A program made the translations under genes and the position numbers. A DNA stretch of 64,000 nt from Lepidodermella squamata (taxonomy: Eukaryota; Animalia; Gastrotricha), in NCBI GenBank assembly GCA_047495785.1, contig JBLDXI010000046.1, forward strand, positions 744,001 through 808,000, given 5' to 3'. Below, piece by piece: positions 1,064 to 55,926 of the stretch. The stretch's first letter is position 1. Each line of letters opens with the position of its first letter. The notes under the pieces are model-generated. The model searched no databases and had not been told where the DNA came from. It saw only the letters and a list, made by a program, of their open reading frames with translations.

Positions 1064-2077
1064 GCTGATTCAGGACAAGGCTCTTCATCATCGAATTCAG
1101 CCGGAGGTTCGGACAAACCGGTTCGTTTTTTCTATTTTGACTTTTTTTTAAATTGTGTCACATTTCGAGACAAGTGCATGAAGTGGCCATGATATCTGGG
1201 GTCTATTGGTGGAAACATCAGAATGACGGAGATATCGTAGATAGAAGAGACAATGTTTGCTCATTTTGAGAAATATTTGAAATTTAAAAAAAAATTCGCC
1301 TAGAAAAAATAATTTGTAAACGTCATTGACGCAAACAATCGGAAGTTCTTTACGGCTATGCCCCTTCTAGAAAAGTTTGAATTTTCCAAGAATTATAGAA
1401 AGATTGTACGAATTGTAAATAATTCGCACGATGTTCCGGGATTGATCAATGATTATTTATCAATTCTAAGAAATCCAGACAGGCAAGAGTAAGCCTTGAG
1501 CTCGCTTTTCCCGTCGCTGCAAGTATCCGAAGGTTTCCGAAGATACACTATTTACTTTGCGGCGGTCATGTACCAGCGAGAGATCTTCTTGAAAAATTCG
1601 AAAGTTCGCTCTTTGCTAATGCCCTTATCTCTTTTTCAGGTAGGCGACTTCGATGAAGAATACGTGCACTACAGACTGCACCTTGAGGAATCTCCATCTC
1701 GTTTCTATCCACACACTTGTCTCATTTTGCCAATGATCCTCTTCCTGGCTCAACAAAAAAAGCTGAAGGATTTCTACTACAAAGAGATCCAGATGCTTGT
1801 CATAAAGATCGACAAATGTGTCAGGAAGAAGCACGGACAAAAGGAAGGCAAGGAGTACCCTGATTCGGCTTGCCTGCCCAAAGACATCAAGAAGTATTTC
1901 CCATCTCTGGCGGTTAGGGAAGCAAGAGGAACAGGTAAAATGGGTCCCGATACTTCGCGCCTGGCGAACATCGCTACTGATGAAATGATGGCTCAATATT
2001 TCAGCCAAACCAAAGACTACTGCCCAAAGTGCACCCCGAAATATTCGCCTAAAATCAAGCGAAAGAAGCACAGTTAA
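1064..2077 (+). CDS. Paralog P1 (5' partial): linker exon plus H..H..CxxC C-terminal domain
   Basis: Exon 1064-1120 (ADSGQGSSSSNSAGGSDKP, phase 0) and terminal exon 1640-2077 (VGDFDEEY...YPH...KKH...SQTKDYCPKC...KRKKHS*). Both are homologous to P2 and P4 exons. AATAAA near 2404. Confidence 0.8.
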
Positions 2078-2562
2078 TTTGCGCCGTTCGAAATATGCGC
2101 AAATCGAAAATCGCTAGCCTAGCTAGTTATTTTCAAATTTATGACATTTTTTAGTAACACGGCATTTGATTGGTTATGTTTTTTCACTACGAAGCCCGTG
2201 AAAGTTCGATACTTATTTCTTCAACTCGGTTCTAAATTTCAACTCGAACTTTATTTTGTTGTTCGATTGTATTAATTCGCCTTTTTTCTAGTTTTAACCA
2301 CCTCGTCTGAAAGACTTGTTCCAACTATTTTTGCGCAAATTGTTATCCGGTTGTGAAATTGTGAAACCAAAGGTGCCTAATTGACGATATTTTTCTTGCC
2401 TTCAATAAAAAAGACTATCCCTTTTTCATATTGTATTTTTTTTATTTTTAGAATTTTACATTGTGCGATGAATCGTTTACCCCAGTAAGCCACTGGCGAT
2501 TTGAGATCTCTTGATTGTAGCCGTAAAATTCTTGTGACTTGGTTTGAAATTATCCTGTTTAG

Positions 2563-2720
2563 GCATAGCTTAAAACATGATCGGCAACGGCCATTCGTAC
2601 ATGGTTACTTGTGAGGCGGGCGAAGACGTTAAAATAGCGGGCCTTTCAGGAAAAAAGTTGGTGAGCAAAATCAATTATTTCATCAATCGCCGTTTGATGC
2701 ATTGTGAACTAAATCAGATA
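2563..2720 (+). pseudogene. Orphan first beta-module exon (MIGNGHSYMVTCEAGEDVKIAGLSGKKL) cut off by retroelement DNA
   Basis: Near-identical to 10775-10932 and homologous to P4 exon 18890-18982 plus its intron. Homology stops near 2720. Confidence 0.65.
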
Positions 2721-2757
2721 AAGTCGGATGCCATAGCTGGCCGAACCTTCTCCACAG

Positions 2758-5790: not shown

Positions 5791-6740
5791 TAGCATCTCA
5801 ATCTTAAGCTCAAGAAGACCACCAGAAATGGTGAATGGGCTCTAGCCATCTTCAGCGTTTGGCTCGCTCGTATTACAGTCAGTACTCGCCATATTACACT
5901 CCGGTATAGGTATAGTACACTTTTCGCTTAGGTACACCTTTTTCTTGTCCCCCCGTGAAAGTGAACTAAAGCGAGTTCTGACTGTACATTCTCTAAAACA
6001 ATTTAGACGGTTACAATTAATATTTTTATTAATTGGGGCCTCGTCACACAATGGAGCCGAGCAATTTACCTGGACAATCGATTTATCCGAATGCAATGGT
6101 AAGCAACTTTCAATATTTGACATGCTATACCACGATGATTCATCTAATGGCTGGTCCTATCTAATTTATCATCTAATTTACTTCGACTGCCGGCGTATCA
6201 AGTAAGACCGCTGAATGTGCTTAGGTTAGACTGTCTGTTTTGTGATCTTCCAATCAAGGTATGCATGTACTTACGTAGTTCCTGCGGCAACTTTCTCAAT
6301 TTCTATCGAAAAATCTAATTGTTATCTACGCTTCTGACACAATTGAAATGACACAATTTTCGAGCTTCCCTCGACTAGTTTTATGTATCGCTTTCACCCG
6401 ACTAAATTGTCTGTATTTTGTTGAAGGACGTGGAATGGAAAGAGCAAGGCGGGCGGTTGATTTGCCGCGCTCATATCGCTGGCGAAATGGTTTGTGAAAT
6501 ATTATTTCTAGCCTTATAAAAGATTAGTTGAATTGCAATGGGTAAGGTTATATCTTCGGGCTCCTTTGATCATGTCGGAACCCATTCCAGTAAGCTCACA
6601 AATTCGCATGAGCCAATTCCTCTCCGTTAACGAGCCATCGTTGCTCAAAGTTAGAAAAGGCGAAAATTGTAAATCACTCGAGGGTGCTCTAACTTTTAAT
6701 TACCTACTACGAACTACAAATTAATCTGCTCCCGTTTATT

Positions 6741-6890
6741 GGGCAGACCGTCATAACAGCAAGTAGCCAAAACAGAAAAGCGACAAAACAGCGAATTTTT
6801 CACTTGCGACATAACAGCAGAAACATGATGCATCTTTCACATAGCAAGTTATCGCTGTTTTGTCGCGAAATATAATAGTTGCTGTTTTAG
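6741..6890 (+). repeat. Dispersed repeat family (AACAGC-rich MITE), partial copy
   Basis: gggcagaccgtcataacagc...tgcgacataacagcagaaac..gatgcatc is shared with 44575-44750 and, inverted, with 60289-60480. Confidence 0.7.
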
Positions 6891-7723
6891 AAAATCCACC
6901 ATTTTCCATATTTTTTGCCTACCGTAAAAGAAATTGTTTGAGACGTCTAAAAAATCGAAACATCTTTAAGCGGAACCAACTTTGAATTTTGCGGAGCCAA
7001 ACTCGAAATATGCCCAAAGTCACCTTTTGAATAATTCAACGAATTTTAGCCTGGTTTCTGAATTGAGGAAAAGTTTACTCTGAATTCACTGGTGATTTAT
7101 TATAATTATTGTGGTCAATCTTAACCCGCAAAAAATATCCGAAAAGTGATTTCAGGCCACTAGAAAATCCCAAAATCTGGTTCGGCTCACCGTTAAAGGA
7201 GGACCCCTAGAAAATAAGGAAACAAATCGAAAAAAATGAAGTATTTGGAGTTATCGATTTCGGATGGCTTCGAACATTTCTCTAACTTATGAATTTCATC
7301 TTGTTTTTATGAAATTAATTGTCCAAATGTAACCAGCGTCGCTGCAAGAGGCATTGTTACTTACGGGATCGCTTATCATTCTGTTTTACTTTCAGATTTA
7401 CTTGCGACGGTGTGAGTTGCTCAAGACTGAACAGTGTGAGTTGCACAAGGCTCGACTGGTTTCTTTAAATGCAGAGCTAAAGGTGATTTCAGTAAATAGC
7501 TCATGAAAGACTAATTTATTATCTTTATAGACCGTCGAAATACAAGAGTGGGAGAAGGGTCCTACGGACGTCTATCACTACAAGGAAACATCTGATACTC
7601 GGCAGGAGGTGAGTGCAAAGATTGTTTCTTTGCTTAGGTCCGAGCTACATTGTGCTCGACTCGAGGCGGAATTACGATCGAAACCAATTGTAACAATTGT
7701 ATAACAATTTAACATTTTATAAA

Positions 7724-8143
7724 CGAAGTGCACTTTTTTTAACTTTCATACAAAATTAACTTTCATACATATTTTTTTTCATAAAATCGTGTTTTTCAGC
7801 CAAACTGTGATTAGGAATTGGGGTTAGGGGTTAGGGGTAGGTGCCAGGGTTCGGGTTCGGGTTAGGTTTAGGGTTTGGTTAGGGTTCAGGATTAAGGTTA
7901 GGGTTAGGAAATTTCGAGTTTCGGGTTTCTACGAAGCTCGATTTTTGGGCCCTTGCGCTTCCCGAATAACCATTTTTCATGTGGAAAAAATTGACTACGC
8001 TTTCGGAACCCCGTTTTTCTTTTTCATAAACCGAAAACTAGTCATCTGGCATTTCCCTAATGTTTTCAGCTTGAATTTAATGAAAAAAAATATGTATGAA
8101 AGTTGAAAATTTCATACATATTTATGTATGAAAGTTGGCACCC
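7724..8143. mobile_element. MITE with 9-bp TSD (TTTTATAAA)
   Basis: TTTTATAAA at 7715-7723 and 8144-8152; inverted aactttcatacat/atgtatgaaagtt sub-repeats. Shorter relative at 25361-25512. Confidence 0.7.
7811..7908 (+). repeat. Degenerate telomere-like (GGGTTA)n tract inside the MITE
   Basis: ggggttaggggttaggggtagg...gggttcgggttcgggttaggtttagggtttggttagggttcagg...ggttagggttagg. Confidence 0.8.
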
Positions 8144-10239
8144 TTTTATAAATTGCTTAAATTGTTTAAAAATCGCTGTAAAATGCTTGTTACTTCCATG
8201 ATAGCAGCGTGATATTCCCGATCTGATGGACCAATTTATGCAATTTATGGCCAACGAACGTATTAGGATGGATCTCGAAACCTCGTCTACTTCTGGTGAC
8301 TGCCCTCTGTTGGCACCGCCACCCGTCGAGTGGAACCCTGATCAATCCGGACCGTCTAGCAAGTCTTCAACACCGCAGCACGGTATTGAATTTACCAAAA
8401 GCCCCACGAGCAATCAGGACTCTCATGAGTATCAATCGATGGCCGAGCCGATGTCTCACCCGCCTTCAACATCGCAATCAGGTCCGGAATCCCCCGAAAC
8501 CTCAATGAACAATTGCGAATCACGGTCTCAATTGAGGATCGACCAATCTGGACCGTCAACTAGCAAGCCTACAACATCGCAACCCGATGATGAATTCACT
8601 AAAAGCCTCACGAGCGATAGCTACTCTTTAGCAGAACTATTGACGCTCGAGACGCGATTATTTCTGCTCCCAACATTGCAACCTGTGATACATTCGTCGA
8701 GAGTCCCATGGGCTATTGCGACTCACATTTGCATGGGCCGCGCGAGCCGGTATCTCTTACGTCGCAACCTGGTCAGGCTTGCACCAGAAGCTTAGCGAGC
8801 AATTGCGAATCACTTTCCCAATTGAGGTCCGGGTCGAAATCTCACCCGCCTTCAACAACACGACAAGGCGGCAAACGGCCTAAGAAGGTTAAATTTCCTG
8901 TTCAACTTACTCATTTTAGTAATATTTGTTATATTTAGGCTGTACCAGGAAACGGCTCGGCATCATGGGATTCAACTTCACGGTACACGGTTCGTTCTTT
9001 GGATTTCGAAAATATATAGTGCATGGGCGTAAACCAGGTAGTCGTCGATCTGAGAGTGACATTTTTATTTTTTTCAGGAGAATCCAAGTTCGAAAAGTGC
9101 TGATTTTCAATAGGAAATATCGGTACTAATTTATGGCAATTTTGCGAAAATTTCCTCCTCGTGAAAATGTGTGCGATTTTTTAGAGAAAATATAGGCCGA
9201 AGAAGGGTTTTTTAGTTTTCAGTTTGGTAGTTGTGTGAACAACCAAAACCACCAGCAGCTGGTTACGCCACTGCTATTCAGAATATATTTGGCCTTCAAG
9301 TGGTGGGCTTTGGCGAATTTTCCGTATTTTGCACCAAATTGAAAAAGACGATTTTTGAAATCTAAGACGTTTTCTTCGGGATTTTAGACCTCTAAGATGC
9401 TCCCATCCTCCTTAACCTCAAAGGAATTGTCGATTGTGGTTTGTGTGGAGACGCCGGCTTGATTCCATGAAACATGTCGAATATCCAGCGATCGAGGACG
9501 ACCCAAGAAAGACTGGTCAAACTCGATTGAAGTAATAGTAGAAAACGTGGACTGGCGCGCCACAGAATTAACGGCAAAAAACGGTGTCAGAATTGGAAAA
9601 TTATGAATTTTATGGTATAAAAGCAAATTGCTAATTTTTTGCCTTTCCTTCGCCTTCCACAAAACTTGTGAGGGTATAGATACGCATAACTCGTGTGGAA
9701 GGAAAATAAAATCATTCATATTAATATTTTGTTTGAGAAAAAGATGACTCGGAAATTCTAGAATAATAAGATCCTCTTGACAAACTCGGAAATGTGTTCT
9801 GTTTAGTTAATCTCCATGTCTCGTTTTACAGGTTGCCATGTTCATGGAGGACAATAACATCTACCGTGAAAAATATAAACCTACGGATAAATCCATGATC
9901 CACCAGTCGCGCATGCTCCCAATTATTCTATTCCGTCTGGCTCTAGAAGGCCTGAAGGATTTCAGCAATTTGCAGATTAAGGCGCTTGACAAAAAAATTC
10001 AAAATTTCGCGGATGAGAAGCACGGAATAGGAGCTCGCAAATCGTTCGAGGAGTCTACATGGATTGCGACTATAATTAAAAGATATTTCAAATTGATGCC
10101 ATTTTACGAAACGAAAGGACCAGGTAATGTAATCGAAGACCTCCTAGCGAAGCACCCCGCCACTGCTGGTCTGCTTGCTGAATGTTTTGAGGAAACGAAG
10201 AATTTGTGCTCCATCTGCACCCCACCGCCTCCCGTCACC

Positions 10240-10935
10240 GACTCGCCTAAAAACAAGCGAAAGAAGCACCGTTAATTTGCGCCGTTCAGCTAAAACTAGC
10301 GCAAATCTCGAAAATCGCTAGCCTAACTAGTTATTTTCAAATTGATAAGCAGAAAGGAAGATTTTTTATTAACACGGCATTTGTTTAGTTACGTTCTTAA
10401 CGACCATTTTTTGTGCAATTTCGTTAATTACTTTTTGTTCGGTTTCAACTCAGTTCTAAATTTTGACTCGAATGAGGCTCTGTTTTATTGAATTATTTGA
10501 ATTATTGAATGATTATTGAATTATTTTTTCTAGTCTGAAAGAGTTGTGCCACTATTTTTTGCGCAAATAGTCCTGTTATCCGGTTGTGAAATTGAGAACC
10601 CAAAGGTGCCTAATTGACAATATTTTTCTTGCGTTAAATAAAAAAGACGCACTTTTTCATATTGTATTTTATTTTTATTTTTTGAATTTTAACTCTGCAA
10701 GCCACTGGCGATTTGAGAGCTCTTGATTGTAGCCGAAAAATGCTCGTGACTCGGTTTGAAATTATCCTGTTTAGGCATAGCTTAAAACATGATCGGCAAT
10801 GCGTACATGCGTACATGGTTACGTGTGAGGCGGGCGAAGACGTTAAAATACCGGGCCTTTCAGGAAACAATTTGGTGAGCAAAATCAATTATTTCATCAA
10901 TCGCCGTTTGATGCATTGTGAGCTAAATCAGATCT
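10240..10935 (+). repeat. Direct duplication of about 2040-2720 (gene end, 3'UTR and downstream orphan exon)
   Basis: Colinear identity from tcgcctaaaa..aagcgaaagaagcac..gttaatttgcgccgttc through ...gatgcattgtga.ctaaatcagat. Confidence 0.85.
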
Positions 10936-11860
10936 GGGCAATACCGATAGGTCAGCCGAACCGCATCAAGGTTTGTTTGAACTGAAATTTCGTCTTCAAT
11001 CCTCGAATATTCGGATATTTCTAAAAAATAGCTACAGATTAAGCAGGCTTAGGTAATACTCGGGGGATGTTGTATCGTGCTACTGTCCTTGCATTTCTTT
11101 CTTGCTATTTGTTGAATCAAGGGGTCCCCTACAGAGCAGCAGGCTTCAAAGCAGGATAAACTCAAAAAGCGGTGCAAACGCCACGCAACAATAAATCGAA
11201 TTAATTACGATAAAATTCGGCGTAGTTTTCTGAATATGGACTCATCATAACTTAAGTAGTCCGGCTTATGAATTTTGAAAAAATTTCGAAAAACGACTTT
11301 TTCGACCAAAGTGAGGTCTGAGTCACATTACGGAGGTTTGATGACTTATGTTCCTCAATTTTTGGTGTGAAAAGCTAGAATAGCTGAACATCATGTTAGT
11401 CGATTGGTTGAAAATCAGAGGCTAAGCCTGAGCGCTTGCTGAGAGGACTGTTTAGTGCGTTTTCCCTGCTTTGAAGCCTGCTGCTCTGTGGGGGACCCGA
11501 ATCAAGTGAATCGTTGATGGAATTTGTTATGATTGATACAAACGCCGGGCTTACAGTCTATATTGTCGTGTTGAGGAAAAAAGGTGTACACGTTATAGGA
11601 ACCGTTTGTTATTTTGTGATTGCATCGACTCGGTGCTAAATTTCGGCTCGACTCCTAGAGTTTTACCTATATTTTCAGCCGGCTTTTCACCTTTTACTCT
11701 ACTAATTGTTCCTACCAGTGACTTTGCGCATCTTTTTGCGCGTACGTGTGATACAGCCTGTTGCAATAATATATTTTATTGAGACGAAGTGATGCGTGAC
11801 TGCCGTTGTGCCGAACTTCGCGACTTTGTCAACGAATAAAATATGTCAAGTCTACATAAT
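10775..11860 (+). pseudogene. Deleted remnant of a P4-like paralog
   Basis: Copies of P4 exons 1-2 and introns (10775-11100 vs 18890-19200), followed by family 3'UTR blocks (11627, 11780) and AATAAA near 11835. No terminal coding exon. Confidence 0.6.
11122..11498. mobile_element. MITE with about 33-bp TIRs and 8-bp TSD (Merlin- or hAT-like)
   Basis: gggtcccctacagagcagcaggcttcaaagcagg ... cctgctttgaagcctgctgctctgtgggggaccc; GAATCAAG at 11114-11121 and 11499-11506. Confidence 0.85.
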
Positions 11861-13869
11861 TCTTTTTTTTTTAAATGTTATATGGGTTGGACGCAACCAT
11901 GGGCGCTTTCACAGCGAATTTCGGGAACGCTATTTGATCCAGCGTATGCAACTGATAGCTGAAATCCCAGTAAACCCGCTGGCTACCCACGATAAGGAAT
12001 TTGAGTTTCAGGTACCCGCGAAATAGGGCTTACTTTTCTAGTCTGAAATCAGCCTATTGCCGCTCGACATCACAGGTGTAACTACGTCAAGGACATTCGA
12101 ATCGTAGCGAAGCCATCATTCTCTTTTCCGCCTTGTTACTGTCGACCTCCAGGTAGTGATTGAATACATCGTTTCACGGTGATACATACTTTCAAGCGTT
12201 TTCAATAGTGGGACTGTTATCTGAAGCCTTTACCTGATTTTTCATTAATGTTAACGTGATCGGTTCATACTTATTTAGCCTATTGGCTAATCCGTGTCCC
12301 TAATTGGTGATATGATATTTTGCTGGATTTCATAAATTTGAAGTCAGAGGGATTTTTCAAAAAGATGTGGAATCGCTACCGTAGTTGCCGTAGTTGACCG
12401 TGCCGGCAGTACGGTGCGAGTGCTATTATTTTCGCCAACATTGGCAATATTTTACTGAAAGAAAGTAATGAATGACTGCTGAGCATGCCGATGTCCCAAA
12501 TAAAGTAATGCTGATCAACGCTGTTAATATATAAACATATTAAATAAATAAACAGCCAGTGCGAATTCGGTTGCCGATGACCACACAAGAAGTTCTGTTT
12601 GGTCACGACGCTGAATAAAGCCGCATCGAATTTCGGTGCGAGGTGGTCACTTCCAATGCCATTGCGACGGGTTTTTGGCGAGCGAGACGGGTCAGGAAAT
12701 GGGAACGCAAGCTCTCTTGCGAATGCAAGAAGGTGGCCATAGAATGTAAAGCCGGTGTAACTCGGGTAGTAAAACCTTAACTATGCACACCTGACTTTCT
12801 GTCATTGCAATTTCTTGTTGTGTACCAAAAATTGGTAAAATTTACGATTTTGTGGACTTTAGATGTGTATTGTAAACAATAAGCGCTTTAAAACGTGTAT
12901 TGTACACATTATATAGCGTGTGGTTATGTATTGTCGACAATACACAATTGTCGACTTCAGATGTGACATATGCAACGAGGCGGTGGTGTTTTACTACGCC
13001 GGAGCAAGCGATTTAAGAGCAATTGTTCATAAGAGCAATTAATGAATGATAAATCAAGGAAAAAAGGGCACGCGAATTGATTTTTTGCATTTCTCCATCA
13101 AGCGAATCTCGACCGATTAAACTGCCTGAATCACTGTTTAACCGGCTCCCGTATTCACTTGATCGCCTTCAGAAAAAAATCAAAACACGTGCCACTTTTC
13201 TCCTTGATTTTAAACTCTCACAAGTCTTATTTTTTGCGTAGAGCAGAATAATTTTTATGTGTTTGTTAAGAAGTGTTAAGAAGAGTCCATATTACTGCTA
13301 TTAGTCCCAATGTTGATATAGCTATGTGATTCACCACAGTGCACCCACTTATTGGTGACTTTGGGCTTGAATACCAATCGACTTTATGACTAAGTTCACT
13401 CTAATCGATGAAAACGTCCTCCAATAATGGCCAATTTGTCAGAGGTTTTCTTATCTCGAACCTCAAACCGTCACTGCTATCGGGAGGTTTCTATTAGCAC
13501 TCAGCACTTAGCATGACTTTAACACCGTATCCCCAAATCTATAGCCAGCTTCTATTATTAGTTAAGTATGATTTCTCAAGCAATGACCTCATTTGCGGCC
13601 TTCAATATTGTCTCTCTATTGACCTGACATTTTATCGAGCCTGACATTTGTTATTTCAAACGACCTCCAATCACTGAAATATGTTTGAAACATTTCAGTC
13701 GTTTTATTTTTAGACACCTGGCCATTATGGCTTGTAAAGTCGGCCGTGCTTTTCAAGCAAGTTTTCAACTTTTTCTAATACCCGAAATTGTACCAGGACT
13801 GACGATCTTCAATTTTAGAAAATCTTCTGGCTTGGGCCTCGCTGGGTCATTAGCAATCTGTTTCTGTGC

Positions 13870-15363
13870 ATGTCAATCCTCTCCAAACTCATCTTTCGTC
13901 CACTGTGGAAGGCGATTGCGAATTGTGGAGAAAAACGTCGTGCCGATGTTTGTCTAAATCAGCAATTAATCAATTTATTAATCAATAATTTCAGAAAACG
14001 TTGTTGTTGGTGTTGACCGGTTTCGTGGACAATCAGCGGATCGCAGATGCGTATATCGAAGCAGAAAATCCAAAACAAGTTAGTCTATTGTCGATTGCAT
14101 TTAATAAGTCTTTCAGTCTGATAACCTAATTATACTATCTAGATTCGTATTACCGGCTATGGCATTTATAAGCTGGTTTGCTTTGACAGAGATCGAGAGG
14201 TAATTTCAGGAAATTTTGATGGAAGACTGGCTTCATCAATTATAATTTAAATATTTATTTTTAGACTCTTGCAATTCCTTTCAAGGTGAATGGCGTGCTT
14301 TCAAGTATGTTTCTTAGTAACAGCTCAAAGTTATTCCCAGATATACGCGTAGTAAAAGGTTGCCATGGGGAAGCTATCTATCGGAAATCTTTTTATTTGT
14401 CCTTCACTTTCCTTGCGCAATTTTTCAATCAATTTAGAGGCAACAAACATCTATCTAACAATCAAAAGCAAAATCGATAATCAGTAATAATAGAAAAAGG
14501 ATTGTTTGTTTATCTTCGGTTTGTTTTATTTTCGCTCTTCTCCTTTAGATGTTTTCAGCTACAAAGAAGTCCCTGGTCCTCATCAGCCGGTGAGTTCAAA
14601 GTGTCTTTTCATAATCGGATTGCATTGCTGAGGTGATGCTCGCAACGTTTATGACCGATTAAGGCTCAACTTTGATTCAAGCGGATTATTGTTTCAGGTC
14701 AGCTATCACAATGCCGAAGAATCGAACGACTCTTCCTCATCGGTAAAAAAATGACATAAAATAGTGACTTTTTTACACGTTTGATTTGCAGACTTCGCTT
14801 CTTGATGTGGAACCAGAGGAAGAAATGGCTTTTGATAGCAAGTTGGATACCGAAACCTTGCCAACTCTGGTTTGTATTGCTGTGTTGCGTGTATGAGATA
14901 TCGTTTTATTACATACTTATCATATAGAGCGATCTATCCGACTCGGGGACGAACTCTGGTGGGTCTTACTTGCCTGAACTGTCTAGCTGTTCAAAATCTC
15001 AATCCGGTCAGCATGGAACGGTAGGCTTTCCCCATCGCACATGCATTATTTGCGGGTCAAAGATATCGGCCCGAGTATGGCTCAACTGCAATTCAAACTA
15101 AACAATTTTTTTTATAGGTTACCGAACTGGCCACCGAAGAATTTAAAAAGGACTGTGCAATTCAGACCACCGAAGTAGTTCGAGTCGACTGTGCAACTCA
15201 GGTCATCGAACAATTTCGAGTCGAACTGACGATGCAGGCGATTCAAGGCGCCGCATTGGCGTCACATGATGACATGTTCCCCATCAATGCCGAGCAAGCT
15301 GCGAATGGCGATCAACCACTTGCTAACATTTTGCTCGATGCGTTCCAAGATGAGGATGACTAG
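13870..15363 (+). CDS. Paralog P3: beta module, linker and acidic tail with TQT-like repeats
   Basis: Exons 13870-13947 (tentative start), 13995-14078, 14143-14199 (IRITGYGIYKLVCFDRDRE), 14265-14304, 14549-14589 (NVFSYKE), 14698-14742, 14792-14869, 14928-15020, 15118-15363. All GT-AG, frame open throughout. Confidence 0.75.
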
Positions 15364-15555
15364 CTGATGAATGAGTGATCTCGGCGGAACCAGTAAAACC
15401 ACTCCTTTCTGATTGGTCGAAAGTATTGAAAATTATAGTCCGGATATGCAGGATCAAAGTCCAACTTATTGATAGAAACAAGTTCGTGATTCCGTCATTT
15501 CGTCATCATCGTTAATCTTTAAAAAAAATAAAATTAAAAAAAAACTAGCCTAATG

Positions 15556-15622: not shown

Positions 15623-15744
15623 TCGTTAGAGAATAAGAGCCCATGGGGAAAGTCTATACCGTTCCATGCTGACCGGATTGAGATTTTGAACAGCTAGACA
15701 GTTCAGGTTGGCATATAGTCCGGATATGCAGGATCAAAGTCCAC

Positions 15745-34104: not shown

Positions 34105-34638
34105 CTTTTTGGGTTTTTTCCTTCTTTACCAGCCAGGTGAATTTTCACAAAATATTCGGCGAATACAGAATTATGGTTGAGTTCTCAGCCTATCGAATGC
34201 CGGTTTCTGCAAATCCGGACGATTCTACTTTGATTTATCGCTAATTTTATAGTCACCTAGACTCTTGCCAAGAACTAGGTCCTAACTGGGTGTCCTAATT
34301 TCGGCCACCTCATCCAGTTCCGCTATAATGTTTAGTATTATATTTTGAAAACGTAATTCAAAGGAACAGCATTATAACGATATAATTGATTTCCTGAGGA
34401 TTGGAGCCAAGGTCGCAACAAATCAATGGTAAGTAACATTTGAATATTATTTTTTTTGCGAAATTCGCGAAAACCTAAAATTAATGTTTCAAAAATTTCA
34501 AAAAATGGCCGAAAATTACGAATTTTAGTTTCTACTTTGAAATGACCACTCGAAATAAAATCTGCCAAAGTCAGCTGCGTATTTTTTTTACCTTGAGAAG
34601 CTTCACCCGGCTGCATTGTCTGTCATTATTATTTCTAG

Positions 34639-37289: not shown

Positions 37290-38668
37290 GCGCACTGGCC
37301 TTTTATTTTGCTGTCAAACTAGCCCTACAGCCATGAAACTTGCTTGTGATGAAATATCTTGATAATAGCTTCAACATTTGAAAATTAACGGCTCATTTTT
37401 TTAGCAGTTTCGTAACATTATTTATTATTCAGCTATAAGTTTGCTATAATTTTTTTGTTGTATTCAAAAGCGGCGGATGCTTGAAATTTGCTGATCATAT
37501 TCTTTCTTGATTAAATCAACTCGGTGATGAATTTCGGCCAGACTGTGAAGTATTGTGATTGCGTGTTCATTTGTTATTTTTCTTAGTCTGAATTGTTGCG
37601 TCCTATTAGTTTCCGCGAAATTCCGACCGGGTTATGATGTTGCCCCTTTAAATTACGACATTATTATTTTTGTTTAAAATCGGCAATATTTTATTGAAAA
37701 GTAATTTTTCATCTCGTGAAGATAGATTCAAATAAATAATACCACAGCCTACAATTGTACCTCGCCTGCAATAAACCCTCACTTTTCTCTTGGTTTGAAA
37801 CTATAAAAACACGGCGTGTAACGACATTTCAGAAATTTTGATCTGAAATGTCGCGACAATTCAGAACACGACACTTCAGAAAATTAATTAATGATTATTC
37901 TGAGCGTCATTTCAGAACACGAGGCGTCATTTCAGAATGAAAAACTCAAAATATATTTTTAATATAATTAATCCGAAAACTCCGAAAAATCAGAACATTA
38001 ATATTATTAACTCAGAAACTCAGAAATTTATATAAAAAACTCAGAAAACTCAGAAAACTCAGAATAATAATTACGTTTCTATATGCAGTGGGCTGTGGTC
38101 CGACTCAGACCAGCTCTGATGGGGCTTTATCACCTTCTCGTAACTCTGTCTCCACTTCTGAATCTGATGGGCCGTTGGCCGATTTCGGAAGCCAGAATTT
38201 CGGTCGTAGTCGGCCAAGCCTTGCAACGAAGGCTACGATGATTTACTTGGGGTTGCATCGGGGGGTTTCAAGGGCCATTTCAACGCATGGGCACACAGGG
38301 CACGTGCCCAGGGGCCCTTGCCTCAGTTTGTCAATTTTTCGAGGGTTTGGAGGGCTCACAAAAATGGCTGGTGTACCATGAACAGATGCAAATGTATAGA
38401 GGTCGCCAATTCTCTTATTCTCCCCGTTGAAAATGACCAAAATGCCCCTCTTAATTCGACAATTTTCCGCTGGCTACAACGATGATGATCTTCCGCCTCT
38501 TGGCATATTTCTGATTTTATTTTACTACCACCGCCTGTTACGGCGCTCTCGGCGCGATTACATAGCCTCATAGACTTAGAAATTAATGATGCAATCAACA
38601 ATGTAAAAAGGCGATATAAAATTAACGGTAGAAAAGATAATATGCCGTTTCTCTTAAAAGAGTGCTGG

Positions 38669-41578: not shown

Positions 41579-43193
41579 TGTTTAAATTTGACGATCTACC
41601 TTTGCCGTTTGGCTTCGAGCTGCTCTTGGAGTCGTCCTTGGCATGCTGCATGGGGACATCCTGGGCCGTTTCGGTGACTAGGTCGCCGTCGTTGATGCTC
41701 ACATGGACGAATGATTTGTTGCCCTTAAGCAGAGCTATGAGTTCCGTCATTTTGGTTTCTAGCGCTTCAATACGCTGAGCCTGCCTGGTAAGCACCTCGG
41801 CGATCACGGAGTCAACCTGAGTTTTCAACTTCTTTAGCACTGCGTTGGTGATCTGTTCGATTTTAGCATCATCAATCTGAACCAGAGACTCCTGTCCTGA
41901 GGGAGCTTGCGTGCTGGCAGCTGATGCCAGCTTGTTCGTCTTCACTTGCTGAAGCTCCAGCCATACGTTCTTGACAGGCGGAGGGGCAGCGACGGGCGTC
42001 GGCCTTGAACCGTCGGCTTGCTGCTGTGCTGTGTCGGACCCTAAAATTGTGTGGATTGCGGACCTATTCTTGGCTTCGAGTTTACTCCAAGCATCTCGTA
42101 CTGCCTTGCAGCCAAACCAGCCAGACGAGTGCAGACCATCGCAGTTCGCACACTTCCGGAAGGCTTCGTTGCCAGCTTTCTTACACTCATGAGTGATGTG
42201 GGCGCCAGCGCACCAGCCGCATTTAGCAGCCTTCGCCTTGCAGGCTGTTGTGAGATGCTCGAAGGATTGGCAGTAGTTGCACCTGGGCGGGTTGACCTTG
42301 GCTTTCATTTCTTTGCCGAAGATTTGCCATATTTTCTGCCAACGTAACCCATTGTTTAGCACATTCCAAGCTATAGCCTTAGATTTGAAAAAGCAGATAA
42401 CAGTTTGATGATCGTTTTTCGAGGTGACCACCACGTCCTCAACGTAATCTGACCAGTTGGCCTTGACTTCTTCAGCGCTCACTTCGTTCGGGAAATTAGT
42501 ACAGATCACAGCCCTGCCCTCGACGATTGCCTTTTGGTGGAGACTGGACGTGTCGTTCGCCGCGGCTGGGGGTGTTTCATTCGGGAAGATCTCGTAGTAT
42601 CGCTTGGATCTGTGGACCCTCGCTTTGCCACCGAAGAGCGTCGGCGGCCAGTCCCGCTTCTCCAGCGCGGCCTTCGCCATCTCGGCCTCAATGAATGTTA
42701 CCCGAATGCCACCTCTGGCTAATACCTTGATTTTGTAACACACGTAATTGCCCTCGGGGAGACGCTGAAGTTCGTCCTGAACCGCCTTCTGATCGATAAA
42801 GTTTGGCGGGACATTGTCAATCACAACAGTTCGCAGCTCTATTGCTTGATCACGTAGCAGGTTTTGGGCTTGCTTCACAGCGGTATTGGGCCCCTGTCCA
42901 TGTGGGACCTCCCGGCGAGTGGCCACCTTTCGGTTGCGGCCGGGGGTACTATCGGACCCGAACGAGGTGTTGCCCATTTCGGCTTCGCCTTCATTTCCGA
43001 GACGAAATTTCTTACCCTTTTTATTTGCGACCACCTGAAAATCGCTGTCGTCGGCTAGCCCGTCATCAGTTGATACCCTTGGCTCTTCGACAGACGCATC
43101 GAGGTCGATTTCAGTAGCTTGGCTTATTGATTCGGTGAGGTCGTGGAAGACCTCGCCGTCGTCGTCCGAAAAAGTTGACGGCTGAGCCATCAT
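41571..43193 (-). CDS. LINE ORF1 (gag-like nucleic-acid chaperone), 540 aa
   Basis: Three CCHC knuckles (CNYCQSFEHLTTAC, CGWCAGAHITHEC, CANCDGLHSSGWFGC), RRM-like segments upstream and a coiled-coil-like C-terminus; overlaps ORF2 by 8 nt. Confidence 0.95.
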   Translation of the reverse strand: MMAQPSTFSDDDGEVFHDLTESISQATEIDLDASVEEPRVSTDDGLADDSDFQVVANKKGKKFRLGNEGEAEMGNTSFGSDSTPGRNRKVATRREVPHGQGPNTAVKQAQNLLRDQAIELRTVVIDNVPPNFIDQKAVQDELQRLPEGNYVCYKIKVLARGGIRVTFIEAEMAKAALEKRDWPPTLFGGKARVHRSKRYYEIFPNETPPAAANDTSSLHQKAIVEGRAVICTNFPNEVSAEEVKANWSDYVEDVVVTSKNDHQTVICFFKSKAIAWNVLNNGLRWQKIWQIFGKEMKAKVNPPRCNYCQSFEHLTTACKAKAAKCGWCAGAHITHECKKAGNEAFRKCANCDGLHSSGWFGCKAVRDAWSKLEAKNRSAIHTILGSDTAQQQADGSRPTPVAAPPPVKNVWLELQQVKTNKLASAASTQAPSGQESLVQIDDAKIEQITNAVLKKLKTQVDSVIAEVLTRQAQRIEALETKMTELIALLKGNKSFVHVSINDGDLVTETAQDVPMQHAKDDSKSSSKPNGKGRSSNLNNV

Positions 43194-44574
43194 AGATGGA
43201 ATGTAATAGGGAACAAGCTGGGTTAAGCCCGGCTTGGAATTATTTAGAAGAGGTTGGGTAATTAGGAAATATAGATGATTAATTTATTGGCTTAGTGCCA
43301 GTATAGTAAATTGTAAGCTAAAGGGCTGAAAGAAAAGTCAAGTTAAGAAAAAAAGCGAGAAAAATCCACGTGCTTTTCAAAACGAAATTAAACGAAAAAA
43401 AACTTGACCAGGACACGGATGACGTGTTACATGGCAGTGGAGCGGGCGAGCGACAACCGGATAATTTTATTCGGCTCGCGAACACAAATTGGAACGGGTC
43501 AGAGGTCATCCCGATCTAGTGGCGGATGGGACCTATAAAAGTTGTCTTAGACTTTTAGAATAATTTTGTAAAATAATATTCGGAGTTTTCGGAGTTTTCA
43601 AAGTAAAATTCAAATATATTTCTGAGTTTTCTGAGTTAATTTTTAATTATTTCTGAGTTTACAAAATAAATAGAAAAATATTCGGAGTTTTCGGAGTTTT
43701 CGGAGTTATTTAAAATAATTACAAAATTCATTTTTCTGAGTTGAACGATTCTGAAATGACGCGTTGAGTACTGAAATGTCGCTAAAATAAAAATGATTTT
43801 AATTTTCTGAAGTGTCGCGTTCTGAAATGTACGTTCTGAAATGTCGATTTCTGAAATGTCTCTACTGAAATGACGTAGATCCAAACACGGCACCCAATTT
43901 CGGTTTTTACGGTAATTGGGAAACACGAGTTTAGCCTTGATCCTGCCAACAACGTGTTTCCCTTCTGGGTTAGGCGTTGGCGTAAAATACAGGTCGTGCT
44001 CGTCACCCTGCTGTTCTTCTTTCTTTAAACACCAGCTCACGCTTTTTATTACACAGCCGACAGCTAGCAGCTAACAGCCAACCACCAGCAAGCAGATTGC
44101 ATGATAGTTGTTCTCCGGAAAGTAGGAGATAGTAGGAGATAGTAGGAGAAAGTAGGAAAGTAGGCGGAACCCAAGCCGGCCGCATGTGAGGTTTGAGAAC
44201 TACTGAGATAAGGTATATATCTTGATGGAGAAAGGAATTCTGTGGAATTCCCCTTCGGAGTCGTAAGATTTTGTAGGTGATAATTTCTTATCATCGGCAC
44301 AATTTTCCTTATTTATAAAAGATTTTTCGTGCACTCTTCAGCAGTCTTGGATTCTGCATCTTACTACTGAAACACATTTTACCTCTGAGAAGAGATCCTT
44401 CAAAATCTCGATTCGGTTTCTATATTCTGTGCCATCCAAGACTGCTTAAATGCCTGCGCGTGTCATCGGGCTTCACAGGGGCCCTGGGAAGGAATACATT
44501 ATTCCCGGAATTTCTCAAGTAATTTCAACGAAAAATACACGCGAAGCGAGAAAATGTCGAAGATTTCCCACTTG

Positions 44575-45008: not shown

Positions 45009-48000
45009 ATGAATGATCAATCCAACTACGCAAAAGCGCCGAGCTCGTTTGGCGATGTTCCCCAATCAACATCGACTGCAGCGAATTTTTGGGTAAGTGA
45101 ATTTTGATAATTTTTTTTAATTTGCTGATATTAATTATGGTTTACTAACTCAAATTTGAAAGATATCTTAAGCTAGCTTATCTAAAGGTATATTGAATGT
45201 TTCATGTTGTGGGTAGATGCTTGACGATATTTTGCTTTGGTTTCTATGAGCTGTCTAGTATTTTTTTACCCTTTGGATGTTTCCACTCACTCATTTACTT
45301 CCACTTCAGTATCAACATTTCTTTACTTCTTTCTGTAACTTTGAAAATTCACTCATTTCACTAACTAACTGTCATGAATTTCAGAAAACCCTGCAGTGGT
45401 TTTTCTGTTTCATCTGCAATCTGCGGAGCACTAGTGCGAATATCGAAGGAGAAGATCGTAATGAGGTTTGTCTAAAATGGCGATCCAGTTATATAGGTCA
45501 TCTTTGCTCAACTGCGAGATTTGTCATTTGCAGATTAAACTCAGTGATGTAGTTTTCGACCCGGAATTTTCGACTATTGGTGCAATCATCGTTACCGAAG
45601 ACGCTCAAGCTCTGGTTAGTATTGTTGTATTAGTGCGTTGTTGAGTTGAGAATTTGCTTGCTATGATGTAGGGTGGTCCATCAGTCTACCAGTCAACGAT
45701 CTCCGTTGCTTCGCAGCCGCCTGAGCCGCTAAAATCTCAATCCGGTTGGTCTGCAACGGTACGTTTTTGATCGAATTTCAATCATTTCATTACAGCGAGT
45801 CCCAGAATAAGTTACGCAGCTAATTCAACTTATTTTCTTTACAATTAAACCCACCGACAGAAAATGCTATCATTTATCTGCGATTTAACCGAAAAAAAAA
45901 TTATCGGATAAAACCCGAAAATTCCCGATTGCGACTGGTTTGGTTATTTTCGGTATGTTACCCGGTTGGAACAAATTTCTCCGGATCCCATTCACAAGTG
46001 GCATACTAGAAATTACTAATCTCGCGATTTTTTGAATTATTCTAAAAATTTTCTGGCCTTCGAGTTTCTGAACCCTTGCGATACATATGGGACACGCTGT
46101 ATAAAACTAGCTGTCATCAATTTTAGGAAACCTTGCGTCGATTGTTCTGTTTTTTGTGCGATCTGTGGAAAACGAGAGCGGACCCCGCTGAGCTTAAAGC
46201 GCCTGAACCGCCAAGCTGCATCACTGTAAAGTCTCAACCCGGCTTAGCTTTAACGGTAGGCTTTTTCGGATTTATTAAAATAGTCCAGAACTTGTTTTCG
46301 AGTATAACCGGTGTTTATTGTGGTAATTTATGGGACCAAAATTTTCCAAGGTGAGGTTTATTTTCCCAGCTTTGAATTGTGGATTTCTTGAGAAAATTAT
46401 GGATTCTGAGCTTATACAGGAAAATTTAGTTTCGGTAACAGAGGGGTCCTTGTAAAAAACTATACCTATCTACTTATATAATTTCAGTAGAAATCATCTA
46501 ATAATATTTAATAATTGATATTAATTTAATAATTAATATTAATTAATATTAATATTAATAATAGGTCGTGGCTAACAACACCCCCCGTAGTGGGTGTCAA
46601 TAAGTGACTATTTACACCCACTGGGTGTCAATAACTTGCTATTTACACCCAGTGGGTGTCTAATCCTTGCTATTTGCACCCACCTGCTGGGTCGCGTTAA
46701 CTTGCTATTTACACCCACTGGTTTTACCTTAGTTTTAGCTCAGAAAACAGTAAAAATTCAAGTTTTGAGGGTAATAAGGCATTAATGTTCATGAGAAATT
46801 GCGTTGCGGTGTTGAAATGGAAATAGCCTTAGTATTTGGACCATTATGAGCCCAACATAATTTGTGATTTTCAGCTTTCATAATATCATTTCAAGTAAAG
46901 TTGAGCTATTAGGTATGTGAGTAATTGGCTTTCCAAATCTGCTTTCCAAATAATTATCACAGCGACCAGCATCATTCACTACTTTGCGATTCTGTTATCT
47001 TGACGTCAAAAATCATATACACGTAACACATCGAGAGGAAGCAATAACCCGTATTGCCGGTTTCTTATTACATGCGATTAAATCAAAGTTTCACAAGTAG
47101 TCAATAGCCGAAATTCATAATTTCAACAAAAAATGAGAATCGCAGCATCTAACAGTTAGAATATACTGGCATAAGAAGTATCATGGATTTGCATGAATTT
47201 CGAATTCAAGTTCTTGACATTATTACACCAATTAAAACGCGCTGTTATAATTGCTGCCAAGGTGAAATTAGTCAACAAAAAACCTAATTGGATTAAAGAC
47301 AGTGAATCAAAGAAAATAACATTGCTCGCGGGCAATGCGAACATGTTTTTTAGAGCAGAAAACACATTTTAAATGAGGCGGTTTCAAGACTATCAATATT
47401 GCGCGGCACCCAGCTTTTATTCGCCTAAAATTCGCCAGGGATCAGAACGTTTTGGCGGGGTCATTGATCAGACGTCAGGGATGATGATCAGCCGTCTTCT
47501 CGATCAAAAATCGGTAAAATCAAAATCTATATTCCAGGGTTAGGGCAGCTTCGGAAACCTTATCAGAGAAAAATAGATGAATTGTAAGAATTTTCGTTGA
47601 AAAATTACACATGATGCGCATCACGTGAGACTTGACGTCATAGAGAACATAAGTAAAAGATGAGAAACTCACGCTAATAGAAACTTGAAACATCGGTTTT
47701 CTTTAAGCAGGACCTTTTCACAAAATGTGCACAAAATGCGCACTCTGCTCTCGCAAACCCACCAATTTTGGGCAAAGCTTTTCTCTGGTTGTACTACTTC
47801 GAATCGGACTCCCCTTTTTATGGTGAATAGACCTGATTTTGAACTTCAAAATTTACCCAACGTTTAAAGATATAGGTATGCAACGGCCAAGCCTTGACGC
47901 CCTCCTGAAGCTGAAAAATGTCGCGATACCGAAGCGAAAAATACCGAGCTCGCGCATTGTTATTGTCGTTGAACAACTCGGATTTAGGTTGTTTATTTTT

Positions 48001-49579
48001 TAGTTTCAAGATGACGTAAAAATTGCGTCAAATCGAAGCGAAAAATGCCACCTTTTACCTGTCACCCATCACCTACTGTTGCCATAGTTGCAATAAACTG
48101 AAGTATACTAAAAAAGCCTAAATCCGAGTCATCATTCAACGACGCTAACGATATGGCAATGCGACAAATAATTTCGCATATTTGGAAACCAGGTGCCTAT
48201 AGAGCTGTTCGTAAATTTATGAAGAATTATCAATGAGAAGAAATCGTAACCTAAATAAGACGGATGATGATTGAGGAGCTCTAAACTAATGTTAGATATG
48301 AAACAGGTACCACTTCCTGCTACAGGCATGTATCACATGGACTCTTTGAAGATGGACGAAATTTATCGCAATAACAAACAAAACCAAAAACGATAACAGT
48401 CTCTCTGAAAAGACAGCTTAAAATCATAGCCACCCTGTGTAAATAGCTGAAGATTAGCTATAAACTGGTGGGTGTAAATAGCAAGTTAATGCGACCCAGC
48501 AGGTGGGTGCAAATAGCAAGTTATTGACACCCAGTGGGTGTAAATAGTCAGTTATTGACACCCACTGGGGGGTGTAGATAGCCACTTCCTTAATAATAAA
48601 CCCAAATGAAAATACATACATTATTTTCCGGGTATTTCTGCCATAAATTTGAAATTTCCTAAAAATCCCTGAACAATGCCGGTAAAAAACCCTGAAAATA
48701 ACCTAAAATTCCTAAGCAATGCTCTGAACTTTGACCTCGAAAGCCTCGGACATTTTTAGAGCTTTCTGGCTTCTTAAATTAGCCATAAATCAAGGTAAAA
48801 TCGTCCGGACTTGCGGAAAGCGGCATTCGATACCCTAAGCACTCCCCTTTAATTCTGCTTTTGCCGAATATTTTCTAAAAATTCACCTGGCTGGCAAAGT
48901 AGGAAAAACCTGAAAAGCGGCCGAAATTAGGGTGGGGTCCTCTAACCGGAAAATAATGTATGAATTTTCGTTCGGATGTAAATTGAACTTACCGGGAGAA
49001 TATTTATCCGCGATTTTCCCGCGAAATCGAAAGCTCACCGGGGAAAATCCCGATGATAATTGATTTGGTATTTTACCAGGTTGGACCAGGTTGGATTTTC
49101 TTCTTTTTTCAAGAGATTTATAGTTGATGACTAATCTAGAGACATTTTATATTGAAATTGTGTTCTAGGTTCCCATCGTCGGCTATGGGACGTATGACCT
49201 GGTTCGTTTCGACCAAGAGGTGATTTTAGAAATTATACTTAAAATGGAACACTTATTTCATCACCTGAATATTTTCAGACTCTGGGAATCAAATTCGCAG
49301 TCGCTGGCATGCCAATGTCTCGTATGTCACATACTTATTTATATATGAAGTAGAAATCAATTTTGACTGGTTTTATTTTCGCCTTTAGACGTCTACAGCT
49401 ACAAGGAGGCCCCTATTCCTGTGCCTCAAATGGTGAGTGCGAAGTGTCATAACAGGCTCATCCAAAATATTTTTTTTTAGTTCACGGAACTGGCCATGGA
49501 AGGATTTGGGGAGAGCTGTGCGCATCAGGCCGACGCATTGGCTCCACTTGATGGCGATTCGGTTATTCTGGTGGAGTGA
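45009..49579 (+). CDS. Paralog P8 (shuffled architecture, short acidic tail)
   Basis: Exons 45009-45092, 45385-45465 (KTLQWFFCFICNL...), 45534-45614, 45672-45758, 46127-46255, 49169-49219, 49279-49321, 49389-49432 (HVYSYKE), 49481-49579. Open from ATG to TGA; exon boundaries mirrored in P9. Confidence 0.8.
45793..46099. mobile_element. CAGCGTGTCCCATA-family MITE in a P8 intron
   Basis: TA|cagcgagtccca ... tatgggacacgctg|TA. Confidence 0.8.
46564..48589. mobile_element. Non-autonomous Mutator/foldback-like element, 2026 bp
   Basis: GG...CC ends, 130-160 bp TIRs built of ctatttacacccac/gtgggtgt sub-repeats, perfect 9-bp TSD TTAATAATA (46555-46563 and 48590-48598); absent from the P9 duplicate. 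Confidence 0.9.
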
Positions 49580-52717: not shown

Positions 52718-55700
52718 ATGAATAGCCAATCCAACTGCACAAAGACGCCGGGCTCGCTTGACGAAGTTCCCCAATCATCGATTGCAGCGAATTTTCTGGT
52801 TTGAAATTTATTTTTTATCTGCTGATAATTGCGGTTTTCTGTGTTTATTTGGTTATGAATTTATGAATTTGATTTTGACATGGGGAATTAAGCAATCTTG
52901 GATGGGTCAGAATACAGAAACACTTTTCTTGTACGAATGACTGTATGAATCGAGGTTCCGCAGGAACCGAAGATGAATACAGTCATGAGTAAATTAAATT
53001 TACAAAACAGTCAATTACATTTTTAAGGTGGGGTTTTTATTCCAACATTTTGTGCTATTTTCGCAAGCCTCTTGTTAAGCCCACAAAGTGGCTGCAGATA
53101 GTGCGCATGTAAGCATAGGATTACGATATGCCTAGCCTATTATTTCTTTTATCTCTGACTTTTTGAATCTCAGAAAACCTTGCAATGGCTTTTCTGTTTC
53201 ATCTGCAACCTGTGGAGCACGAATGCGAATATCGAAGGAGAAGACGATCGTAATGAGGTTTGTCTAGACTGCCGATCACGTTCTATCGGGTTGCGGCTCA
53301 ACTGTGTGATCTTTGTCATTTGCAGGTTGATCTTTGCGAAGTGGATATCGACCCGGAATTTACGGCTACTGGAGCAATGGTCGATACTGAAAGCGCTCAA
53401 GCTCTCGTTAGTATTGTTATTTTAGGGGGGTTTTTCGTTTGAGACTTCGTTTGCTATATGATATAGGGCGGTCCAACAGTCGATCAGCCGACGATCCCTG
53501 TTGCGTCTAACCTGCCTGAGCCGCCGAAATGTCAGTCCGGTTGGCCTGGAATGGTACGTTTTTTGGTTGAATTTGTCCCAAGAATCAAGACGGCTCATTA
53601 GAAAGGCCCATTCGAAAGGATGGTCGCTTATAGGGTAATGCCGGCCTACGAAGAGATTCGTCATGAGTAACTGAATACACCAAATTTTTGACACTTTGAG
53701 CGATTATTGACTCGAGTTTCTAATTTATTTTTACATCGAAATGAGCGTCTCTACGAAAATAATCTTATAGTGCAAAAAATTGGGAAGTCAGGCCTGCCGG
53801 GGGGTCAACAAATCGAATTGCGGAAATCGAGTTTTTCAGAGTCATTTGACCTTGACATAAATTACTAATTTTAATTTTGGAATTTACATTAAAATTTGGG
53901 AAATATTCCAGCATGCCGAAATTTATTATTTTTTTTTGCTGCAGGAATTTTACTAGTTTTGAGCCATGTGACACAGCGTATCCCAGAACTAATTCAACCA
54001 TTTTTTTTAATTTAACCTACCCTGAGAAAATTGCATCTTTTATCCGCGATTATACGGAAGAAATTGAAAATATTGATTTTTCTACAAATTTCTGGCCTCG
54101 AGAGTTGCTGGTCATTTTTCCGTATTTTCATTTGTTTTTGCTCCTACTGTTACTTATGCAGCTGTCATTAATTTTAGGAAACCTTGCGGCGTTTGTGCTG
54201 TTTTATTTGCGATCTGTGGAAAACGAGAGCGAAGCGCGGTGAGCCTGAACTGCCTGAACTGCCAAGCTGCGTCGCTTCAACATCTCAACCTGCTGGCTTG
54301 CCTTTAACGGTATTCATCTCATTTTTGAGGTGGACCGAATATCCACAATTTTCCAAATATTTTTCGTTTGGCTTGGAATTGTGAACTTTGTGAGAAATTT
54401 CGTGATTTTGATATTTATATTTTCTGATACTGTCTAATACTTGCTGTCATTTATTTTAGGATCCCCTGTCGTTGTTGTTGTACGATCGCACCAGTGGAAG
54501 ACAGGTAGCTTATATCGAACCTAAGGATAATAACAAGGTTTGTTCTCTGTCGATACTAAAAGTCTTGGTCTCATAGGCGAAAATTGGTCCTGAAAGAGTG
54601 TACAATCACTCGGCGAGTAATAATTTCGCTGTAGGACCAATAAGTAGCTCTCTTTTCTACCGTCTATAAAAATGCTGCCGTAAAAAAATATTTGAAAATG
54701 TAAAAATTATTAGCCGGATTTTTTTTATACTTCAAAGTGCCCATTATGAACACTATTTTTAATGCGGAACCAAATTCATCTTGTGGACTCAAAATTGATT
54801 TTTAAATAATTCCAAGAATTTCGGGCGACATTATGATTTCTTAGGTGAAATTTTATACGCTGAATTTTAAAATATTTTCTTTTTGATGTTCCGACAGGCG
54901 GTTTCGGGCTCCACGAATATTCCAAAATTTAGAGAAAATATACCTCAATTTTTAAAATTATCCAAAGTAAAAAAGTGCATTATAGCGGATCCGATACGTT
55001 GTTATAACAATTTGTAATTTTGCATTTTTTTGGGGGAGATTTTAACTATTTTCGGGGCATTTTATAATTGGCATTGTGTTCTAGGTAACCATCGTCAGCA
55101 ATGGCACTTATGACCTGGTTTGCTTCGACCATGCGGTGAGTTTAGAAATTATACTTCATGGAACACAAATGTCATCATTTGAATATTTTCAGACTCTGGA
55201 AATCAAAGTCGCTTCACTGTCACGTATGTTACATACTTACAGCGTGTCCCGTAAGTGCCGCAAACAATGAAAATGCACGATAAAAAAGAATCCCTAGCTC
55301 CGACATGAGAGACGAAGTCGCATCTCGTGGCCAGAAAATTCTTAGTAGGCTCTAAAATGCAATGAAAATACTAATACTAAGAATGATGTCTCACCCCGTA
55401 TCGGATCGGATCGGGTCCGGGTTTGGGATTCCGAAGTCCGAAGGACAACTCTGTAATGTCTCTTGTTAATGGGATTAATAAAGCCCGGAAAAATTTGGTC
55501 CAACCGGGTAAAATACCGAAAATTACCGAACCACTTACCATCTGTGCTTTCCGGGTTGTCTCCGGTAAATTTTTAATTTCTTCGGTAAAATCTCCATGGA
55601 AGGAGTGAAAAATTCTCCATATGGGCTTTATTTCCAAACAAATTTTAGTTTAATTTTAATTTTTTTCGAAATGGTTGCGCAACTTATGGGACATGAATCA

Positions 55701-55926
55701 TATTTTAGCTTTGACTGGTTTTATTTTCGCCTTCAGATGTTTACAGCTACAAGGCCCTTGGTCCGGTTACTCAACTGGTGAGTACAAAGTGTCCTTGCAT
55801 AATCAGCTCATCTAATTAAAAAAAATGGTTTTATTTTAGTTCACGGGACTGGCCTCTGAAGAATTTGGAGAGAGCCGTGGAAATCAGGCCGACGCTCCAC
55901 TTGATTCGGTTATTATGGTGGAGTGA
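52718..55926 (+). CDS. Paralog P9 (duplicate of P8)
   Basis: Exons 52718-52798, 53174-53257, 53326-53406, 53467-53553, 54178-54309, 54460-54537, 55085-55135, 55193-55223, 55737-55777, 55840-55926. Open from ATG to TGA. Confidence 0.8.
55240..55693. mobile_element. CAGCGTGTCCC-family MITE in a P9 intron
   Basis: TA|cagcgtgtcccgtaag ... gttgcgcaacttatgggaca; absent from the equivalent short P8 intron. Confidence 0.7.

Follow-up and report, generated by a model that had tools for sequence, protein, structure and literature searches.

A tandem array of an undescribed modular gene family in the gastrotrich Lepidodermella squamata, possibly encoding nuclear regulators

The window analyzed is a stretch of 64,000 nucleotides (nt) from Lepidodermella squamata (assembly GCA_047495785.1, contig JBLDXI010000046.1, positions 744,001 to 808,000), and coordinates below are counted from its first letter. 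At 1064–55926 it contains a series of same-strand (+) paralogous gene models with homologous exons and conserved boundaries. The family is real, it is an orphan, and at least one member is expressed. The repeated short + strand exons were detected by self-comparison of the DNA and of its six-frame segments, and gene models were built by splice-site scanning and translation by coordinates. Open models were obtained for C, D (with or without E), FG, H, I and J; those of A and B are partial or broken. The array comprises the following features.

1064–2077, +: Gene A, 3' part (exons 1064–1120, 1640–2077); linker end and C-terminal, predicted helical His/His/CxxC domain (C-domain) with KRKKH tail
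2577–2740, +: remnant of a D-type first module exon, truncated by a gypsy-type insertion, inside a block duplicated as 2045–2719 / 10243–10933
6427–10275, +: Gene B (frameshifted; exons 6427–6489, 7396–7482, 7531–7608, 8208–8887, 8939–8989, 9832–10275); module, repetitive Ser/Pro linker with two PSTS motifs, C-domain, KRKKH tail
10776–10969, +: D-type module remnant, frameshifted, two exons
13870–15363, +: Gene C, acidic-tail class (exons 13870–13947, 13995–14078, 14143–14199, 14265–14304, 14549–14589, 14698–14742, 14792–14869, 15118–15363)
18899–20139, +: Gene D; divergent module and acidic linker with PSTS; stop at 20137–20139, or in-frame splice at 20130 to E
21056–22923, +: Segment E (exons 21056–21160, 22210–22245, 22299–22352, 22438–22923); linker and C-domain, without its own module
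23701–23772, +: exon of a decayed D-type copy (23.5–24.0 kb), joined to the 5' end of the FG transcript in an RNA contig
25268–29855, +: Gene FG, 444 amino acids (aa), 16 coding exons, ten joints in RNA contigs
34426–37289, +: Gene H, 302 aa (exons 34426–28, 34639–34710, 35472–35525, 35587–35629, 35677–35708, 35762–35806, 35864–36034, 36749–36811, 36864–37289)
45009–49579, +: Gene I, acidic-tail class, 232 aa; module exons b–d, preceded by degenerate, Cys-rich module exons
52718–55926, +: Gene J, acidic-tail class, 250 aa; module complete (54460–55777); duplicated recently from I

Gene D either ends at its own stop, which is followed by poly(A) signals, or splices to E, the predicted join giving an open 409-aa protein; therefore the array holds eight genes (D+E joined) or nine (D and E separate), plus remnants at ~2.57, ~10.78 and 23.5–24.0 kb. 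The first-pass annotation, made from the sequence alone, had counted nine same-strand models and three remnants: the remnants, the strand and the shared exons stand, and the number nine holds only with D and E apart. Self-comparison and splice-site models agree with its homologous exons and conserved boundaries, and the very short exons that it described are found in the six complete models, where 57 of the 66 exons do not exceed 100 nt, phase 0 accounts for 54 of the 60 introns and the median intron measures 64 nt. The GC content of the window is ~0.39 outside mobile elements. The 5' exons of Gene A were not found within the window, and its linker lies mostly outside. The linker exon of Gene B carries a frameshift near 8600–8635, which may reflect a broken allele, an assembly error or the use of an unusual intron. 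In Gene I module exon a is lost under an insertion at 46.4–49.1 kb, and the Gene C product has at least 222 aa (isoelectric point, pI, 4.5; start codon uncertain). An assembly artefact is ruled out for the array, since divergence among the paralogs is large and long single paths of even depth cover FG in a DNA run (maybe of the source sample).

Splicing was followed at FG, the array locus compared with RNA contigs. One 1234-nt RNA record of run X1 crosses GT–AG joints at 26506/26564, 26586/27736, 27800/28007, 28067/28126, 28195/28305, 28367/28423, 28520/29305 and 29354/29409; further RNA joints lie at 25897/25954 and across a 15-nt mini-exon at 26311. Spliced RNA thus exists across predicted junctions, the lack of which had been named beforehand as a possible refutation. 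The joint 26586/27736 fuses the models at 25 and 28 kb, formerly listed as two genes, so that they form one gene with two modules: module F (25571–26086), a PSTS linker, module G (27738–28199), a PGPSTS linker, a His/Cys exon (29307–29357) and the C-domain (29412–29855). The loose 5' end of the RNA contig 25245–25323 matches 23743–23772 with one mismatch; therefore part of the decayed D-like copy, called a remnant earlier, is spliced onto FG as an exon, and this exon (23701–23772) is probably mostly 5' untranslated region. All four coding differences of FG in the RNA run, a small sample, are nonsynonymous, and three of them also occur in the DNA run. An A>G change at 29590 (Asn to Ser in the C-domain) is seen in the RNA contig and not in the DNA run; it may be a strain difference or editing.

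The N-terminal module has ~70 aa and is split alike in each gene into exons a, b, c and d, with intron phases 0, 0 and 1; B and G lack the c–d intron. The copies of B, C, F, G, H, I and J are mutually homologous (25–52 bits with leave-one-out hidden Markov models (HMMs); none of 2000 shuffles above 7 bits). The module of Gene D reaches 3 bits, a value equalled in 20 of 2000 shuffles, and is possibly a distant copy. The module predicted earlier is thus shared by these seven copies, with D weakly related, and its label 'beta' is a prediction from the sequence pattern. The module exons have no conserved Cys. In B, F, G and H a short amphipathic helix follows the module. Genes I and J contain additional Cys-rich degenerate copies of exon a, and amphipathic N-terminal segments occur in C, I and J (13819–13947, 45385–45465, 46127–46255, 53174–53257, 54178–54309; Cys-rich in I and J), which could be membrane or lipid-anchor motifs.

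The module was searched exon by exon against Pfam and PDB sequences, and therefore its lack of matches weighs little. Exon b matches the tachylectin-2 propeller (PDB 5C2M) weakly, with E 0.0033 for Gene H (summed over repeats, none of which alone does better than E 4.4) and, in a search with the exon-b profile, E 0.067; nothing else was found, exon a has no tachylectin-type match, and Pfam Tachylectin matched none of the exons searched singly. Bacterial tachylectin blades, sought by DNA pattern as references, gave chance matches only. Resemblances to the TDP-43 N-terminal domain, PB1, Sm, SAMD3-like and BEN domains were dropped as unsupported by fold searches or by the (weak) exon-level searches.

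The linkers are of the Ser/Pro/acidic kind described in the first-pass annotation, their fraction of S+P+T+D+E being 0.39–0.55. The motif PSTS occurs 6 times across the B, D, F, G and H linkers, where shuffles give 0.14, and GPS[TAS][SK] occurs there 4 times, where shuffles give 0.06. Of all occurrences in six frames of the whole window, 6 of 9 PSTS and 4 of 4 GPS motifs fall in those linkers, and a seventh PSTS lies in the D-like remnant; C, I and J have neither motif. PSTS is the motif by which Hdm2 and MCM-BP occupy the TRAF pocket of USP7, and USP11 and TPP1 use AGPS and EBNA1 uses EGPS (PMC6203733). The linker motifs could accordingly be docking sites for the TRAF/MATH pocket of a USP7-type deubiquitinase. 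The MATH domain of SPOP is an alternative reader.

The C-domain is encoded by a single exon in five genes, with 20–51% identity and a stop codon directly after the CxxC tail. It is basic (pI 8.3–9.8), and H26, F46, I51, L54, H65, S84, K92, A118, T130, C134 and C137 are invariant (H, H, T-x3-CxxC). With His, His and CxxC conserved, the last helix is probably clamped by zinc; of the helical domain with putative zinc ligands in the first-pass annotation, the ligands are thus invariant and zinc binding is a prediction. The KRKKH tails which it placed in the first two genes terminate A (1640–2077) and B (9832–10275). In the structural model three central helices take a helix-turn-helix (HTH)-like arrangement that overlays CENP-B residues 70–131 at a root-mean-square deviation of 2.2–2.6 A; the fold matches also include non-DNA-binding helical bundles at equal Z. 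Pfam gave no match for the five C-domains (positive controls 61–70 bits), nor did PDB sequences. No homologue was obtained with the five-sequence profile among 1.84 billion representatives, by a word search of 5.8 billion proteins (which covers only proteins of 104–330 aa), or among viral and metagenome contigs. Foldseek against PDB and viral structures gave no clear match, the VIA search was likewise blank, and ESM Atlas features (top scores 0.81–0.83, unnamed) are leads only.

Two classes can be distinguished. The acidic tails proposed earlier as an alternative to the helical domain end C, I and J (pI 4.4–4.5), and module trees separate C/I/J from B/F/G/H (96/93, long branches) in coincidence with the acidic tail or the helical domain. 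The domain tree separates G/H from A/B/E (100/100). Gene H combines an F-like module, a linker with PGPS and PSTS, and a G-like C-domain; therefore whole modules have been gained or lost by phase-0 exon shuffling. The ratio of nonsynonymous to synonymous rates (dN/dS) is 0.64 for the G–H domain, 0.57–0.76 for class-1 modules (0.55–0.76 for several pairs), 0.31–0.41 for class-2 modules and 0.66 for the I–J 5' exons; dS is saturated between subfamilies. Purifying selection that is either weak or mixed with positive selection would give such values. The earlier proposal of an undescribed, fast-evolving, birth-and-death family is supported by the blank homologue searches, dN/dS of 0.3–0.76 between comparable paralogs, the remnants and exon-level shuffling. 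A match of both modules to a described family, named in advance as a refutation, was not found, the module having been searched exon by exon.

The array is interrupted by a gypsy-type remnant (~2.9–5.7 kb), a fragment of a long interspersed nuclear element (LINE; 15.8–17.5 kb) and a LINE at 38672–43283 (−) with an open ORF1 (570 aa, no Pfam match) and an endonuclease–reverse transcriptase ORF2 (970 aa), nested between inverted repeats 37823–38056 / 43619–43860; the setting is thus rich in transposable elements, as noted in the first pass. An intron of Gene B holds a degenerate (GGGTTA)n telomere-like run (7821–7908) between inverted repeats (7703–8166). Around the end of Gene C, adjoining the LINE fragment, are a 30-bp exact direct repeat (15434–15463 / 15714–15743) and an inverted repeat (14973–15035 / 15643–15707). 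An element at 46553–48598 within Gene I, in the block replacing module exon a, has ~130-bp terminal inverted repeats of 31-bp units. At 32908–33648 a stretch of ~365 bp is tandemly duplicated, with coding-like similarity between the copies and no Pfam match, and is flanked by an 84-bp near-identical repeat (32699/34021). Downstream of the array are a gene with VIT and VWA domains (57775–61346, +), of VWA5A/ITIH-like layout, whose first exon starts hydrophobic and signal-peptide-like and for which the word search gave no homologue at E 1e-10, and a neighbouring gene's exon for a C-type lectin domain (62716–63213, −).

The best explanation, held with middling confidence, is a lineage-specific tandem family whose members would act as regulators within the cell, probably in its nucleus; it would work like ZAD-ZNF or KRAB-ZNF arrays or transposase-derived factors but would not belong to them. 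The nuclear role is suggested indirectly by the basic C-domain, the K-R-K-K tails, the lack of signal and transmembrane segments, the HTH-like helices of the model and the USP7-type motifs. A secreted or membrane role of the class-1 proteins was rejected. The array would have been built by duplication of phase-0 exons. In class 1 (A, B, DE, FG, H), one or two ~70-aa interaction modules would oligomerise or bind partners, the disordered linker could recruit a USP7-type deubiquitinase through its PSTS/GPS motif, and the single-exon, putatively zinc-clamped helical domain would bind DNA or chromatin. Class 2 (C, I, J), with a distinct module version and an acidic tail and without the helical domain or motif, could provide adaptors or competitors, like ZAD-only proteins. 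The linker motif copies share ancestry and such motifs can be inert, as PSTS is in DDX24; USP7 docking is therefore a prediction. Nothing beyond analogy speaks for a role in transposon control, the density of transposable elements around the array being no evidence for it. An independent KRAB/ZAD-like system of the gastrotrich lineage, with a new zinc-clamped helical DNA-binding fold and a new oligomerising module recruiting USP7 to targets (possibly transposons), and with module-only members as tuners, appears unlikely.

The single-exon C-domain could also be a domesticated, much diverged DNA-binding domain of a pogo/Tc5 (CENP-B-type) transposase, captured onto a host module; the nuclear role would be the same and the origin more specific. 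The second CENP-B HTH is fully covered in both models, the top Atlas row is HTH_Tnp_Tc5, and lineage-specific expansions of CENPB-type factors (PMC10027918) and transposase capture (10.1101/2020.05.07.082677) are documented. Homology to CENP-B/Tc5 at the sequence level was rejected, as Pfam is blank for HTH_Tnp_Tc5 (PF03221) and hhalign gives a probability of 0.07, the test having used 21 HTH sequences that were retrieved from JGI records with a DNA pattern; neither a DDE_1 catalytic domain nor transposon ends accompany the exons. This origin is rather improbable. The same holds for a cytoplasmic or membrane defence or recognition family, in which a propeller-blade-like (tachylectin-2-like) module would oligomerise for ligands, Cys-rich amphipathic helices of C, I and J would anchor to membranes and the helical domain would be a signalling effector. 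The exon-b match to 5C2M, the ability of a single tachylectin repeat to multimerise (PMC8458387) and fast evolution (the four nonsynonymous FG variants) suit it, whereas the score was summed over repeats, exon a and Pfam Tachylectin gave no match, and the basic domain, KRKK tails and USP7-type motifs suit the nucleus better.

It is distinctly improbable that the zinc-helical domain binds proteins or RNA instead of DNA, in pathways such as those of ubiquitin or small RNAs, and that the family provides adaptors for USP7/MATH proteins: the linker motifs and the non-DNA-binding bundles speak for this reading, but four invariant His/Cys make no RING- or PHD-like ligand count, and the basic charge and HTH-like arrangement argue against it. 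It is very improbable that no special system exists and that the array consists largely of redundant copies, weakly constrained and drifting, of which one or two still work. The dN/dS of 0.55–0.76 in several pairs, the Gene B frameshift, the lost exon of I, the three remnants and RNA at FG (the only locus compared) are consistent with drift, but genes with saturated dS between them still retain their reading frames, splice sites and His/Cys residues, FG is spliced, and dN/dS is 0.31–0.41 for the C/I/J modules.

Both domains, the module in exon-by-exon searches, are without relatives among billions of proteins, and one folds confidently without a clear structural match, which makes them new-fold candidates; the USP7-type motif offers a concrete effector candidate. 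Regulator families of this kind are undescribed in Gastrotricha, and a nuclear role would place the array beside KRAB-ZNF and ZAD-ZNF as another fast-evolving regulator array of independent origin. Gene finders would overlook these genes or break them up, and with ordinary drifting paralogs the value would be limited to annotation.

Known systems resemble the family in parts. Module exon b is like the GW-x-x-F ... D-P-E stretch of the five-bladed tachylectin-2 repeat (PDB 5C2M); unlike tachylectin-2, the family has one or two modules per gene instead of five ~47-aa blades and no signal peptide, and the per-repeat match is not significant. The PSTS motifs of its disordered linkers are identical to those of USP7 TRAF-pocket ligands, and the xGPS motifs are similar; the likeness is confined to the motifs, the host proteins are unrelated, and binding is predicted. 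CENP-B and HTH_Tnp_Tc5 factors are similar in the modelled three-helix arrangement, basic charge, single exon and lineage-specific expansion. Of the likeness to ZAD-ZNF and KRAB-ZNF arrays drawn in the first-pass annotation, the variable disordered linker and the clustered, fast-turnover genes are borne out, while family membership is not: no tandem C2H2 fingers are present (one CxxC per domain, five C-domains blank in Pfam), and the module exons, tested singly, gave no Pfam match to ZAD (four Cys) or KRAB. The C-terminal part here is one helical domain, and the module can be doubled and has no conserved zinc cysteines. As in ZAD-ZNF (insects) and KRAB-ZNF (tetrapods), an N-terminal interaction module, a variable disordered linker and a C-terminal basic, here putatively metal-binding, part are combined in tandem clusters with shared exon structure and with members that are devoid of the DNA-binding part (PMC7655104).
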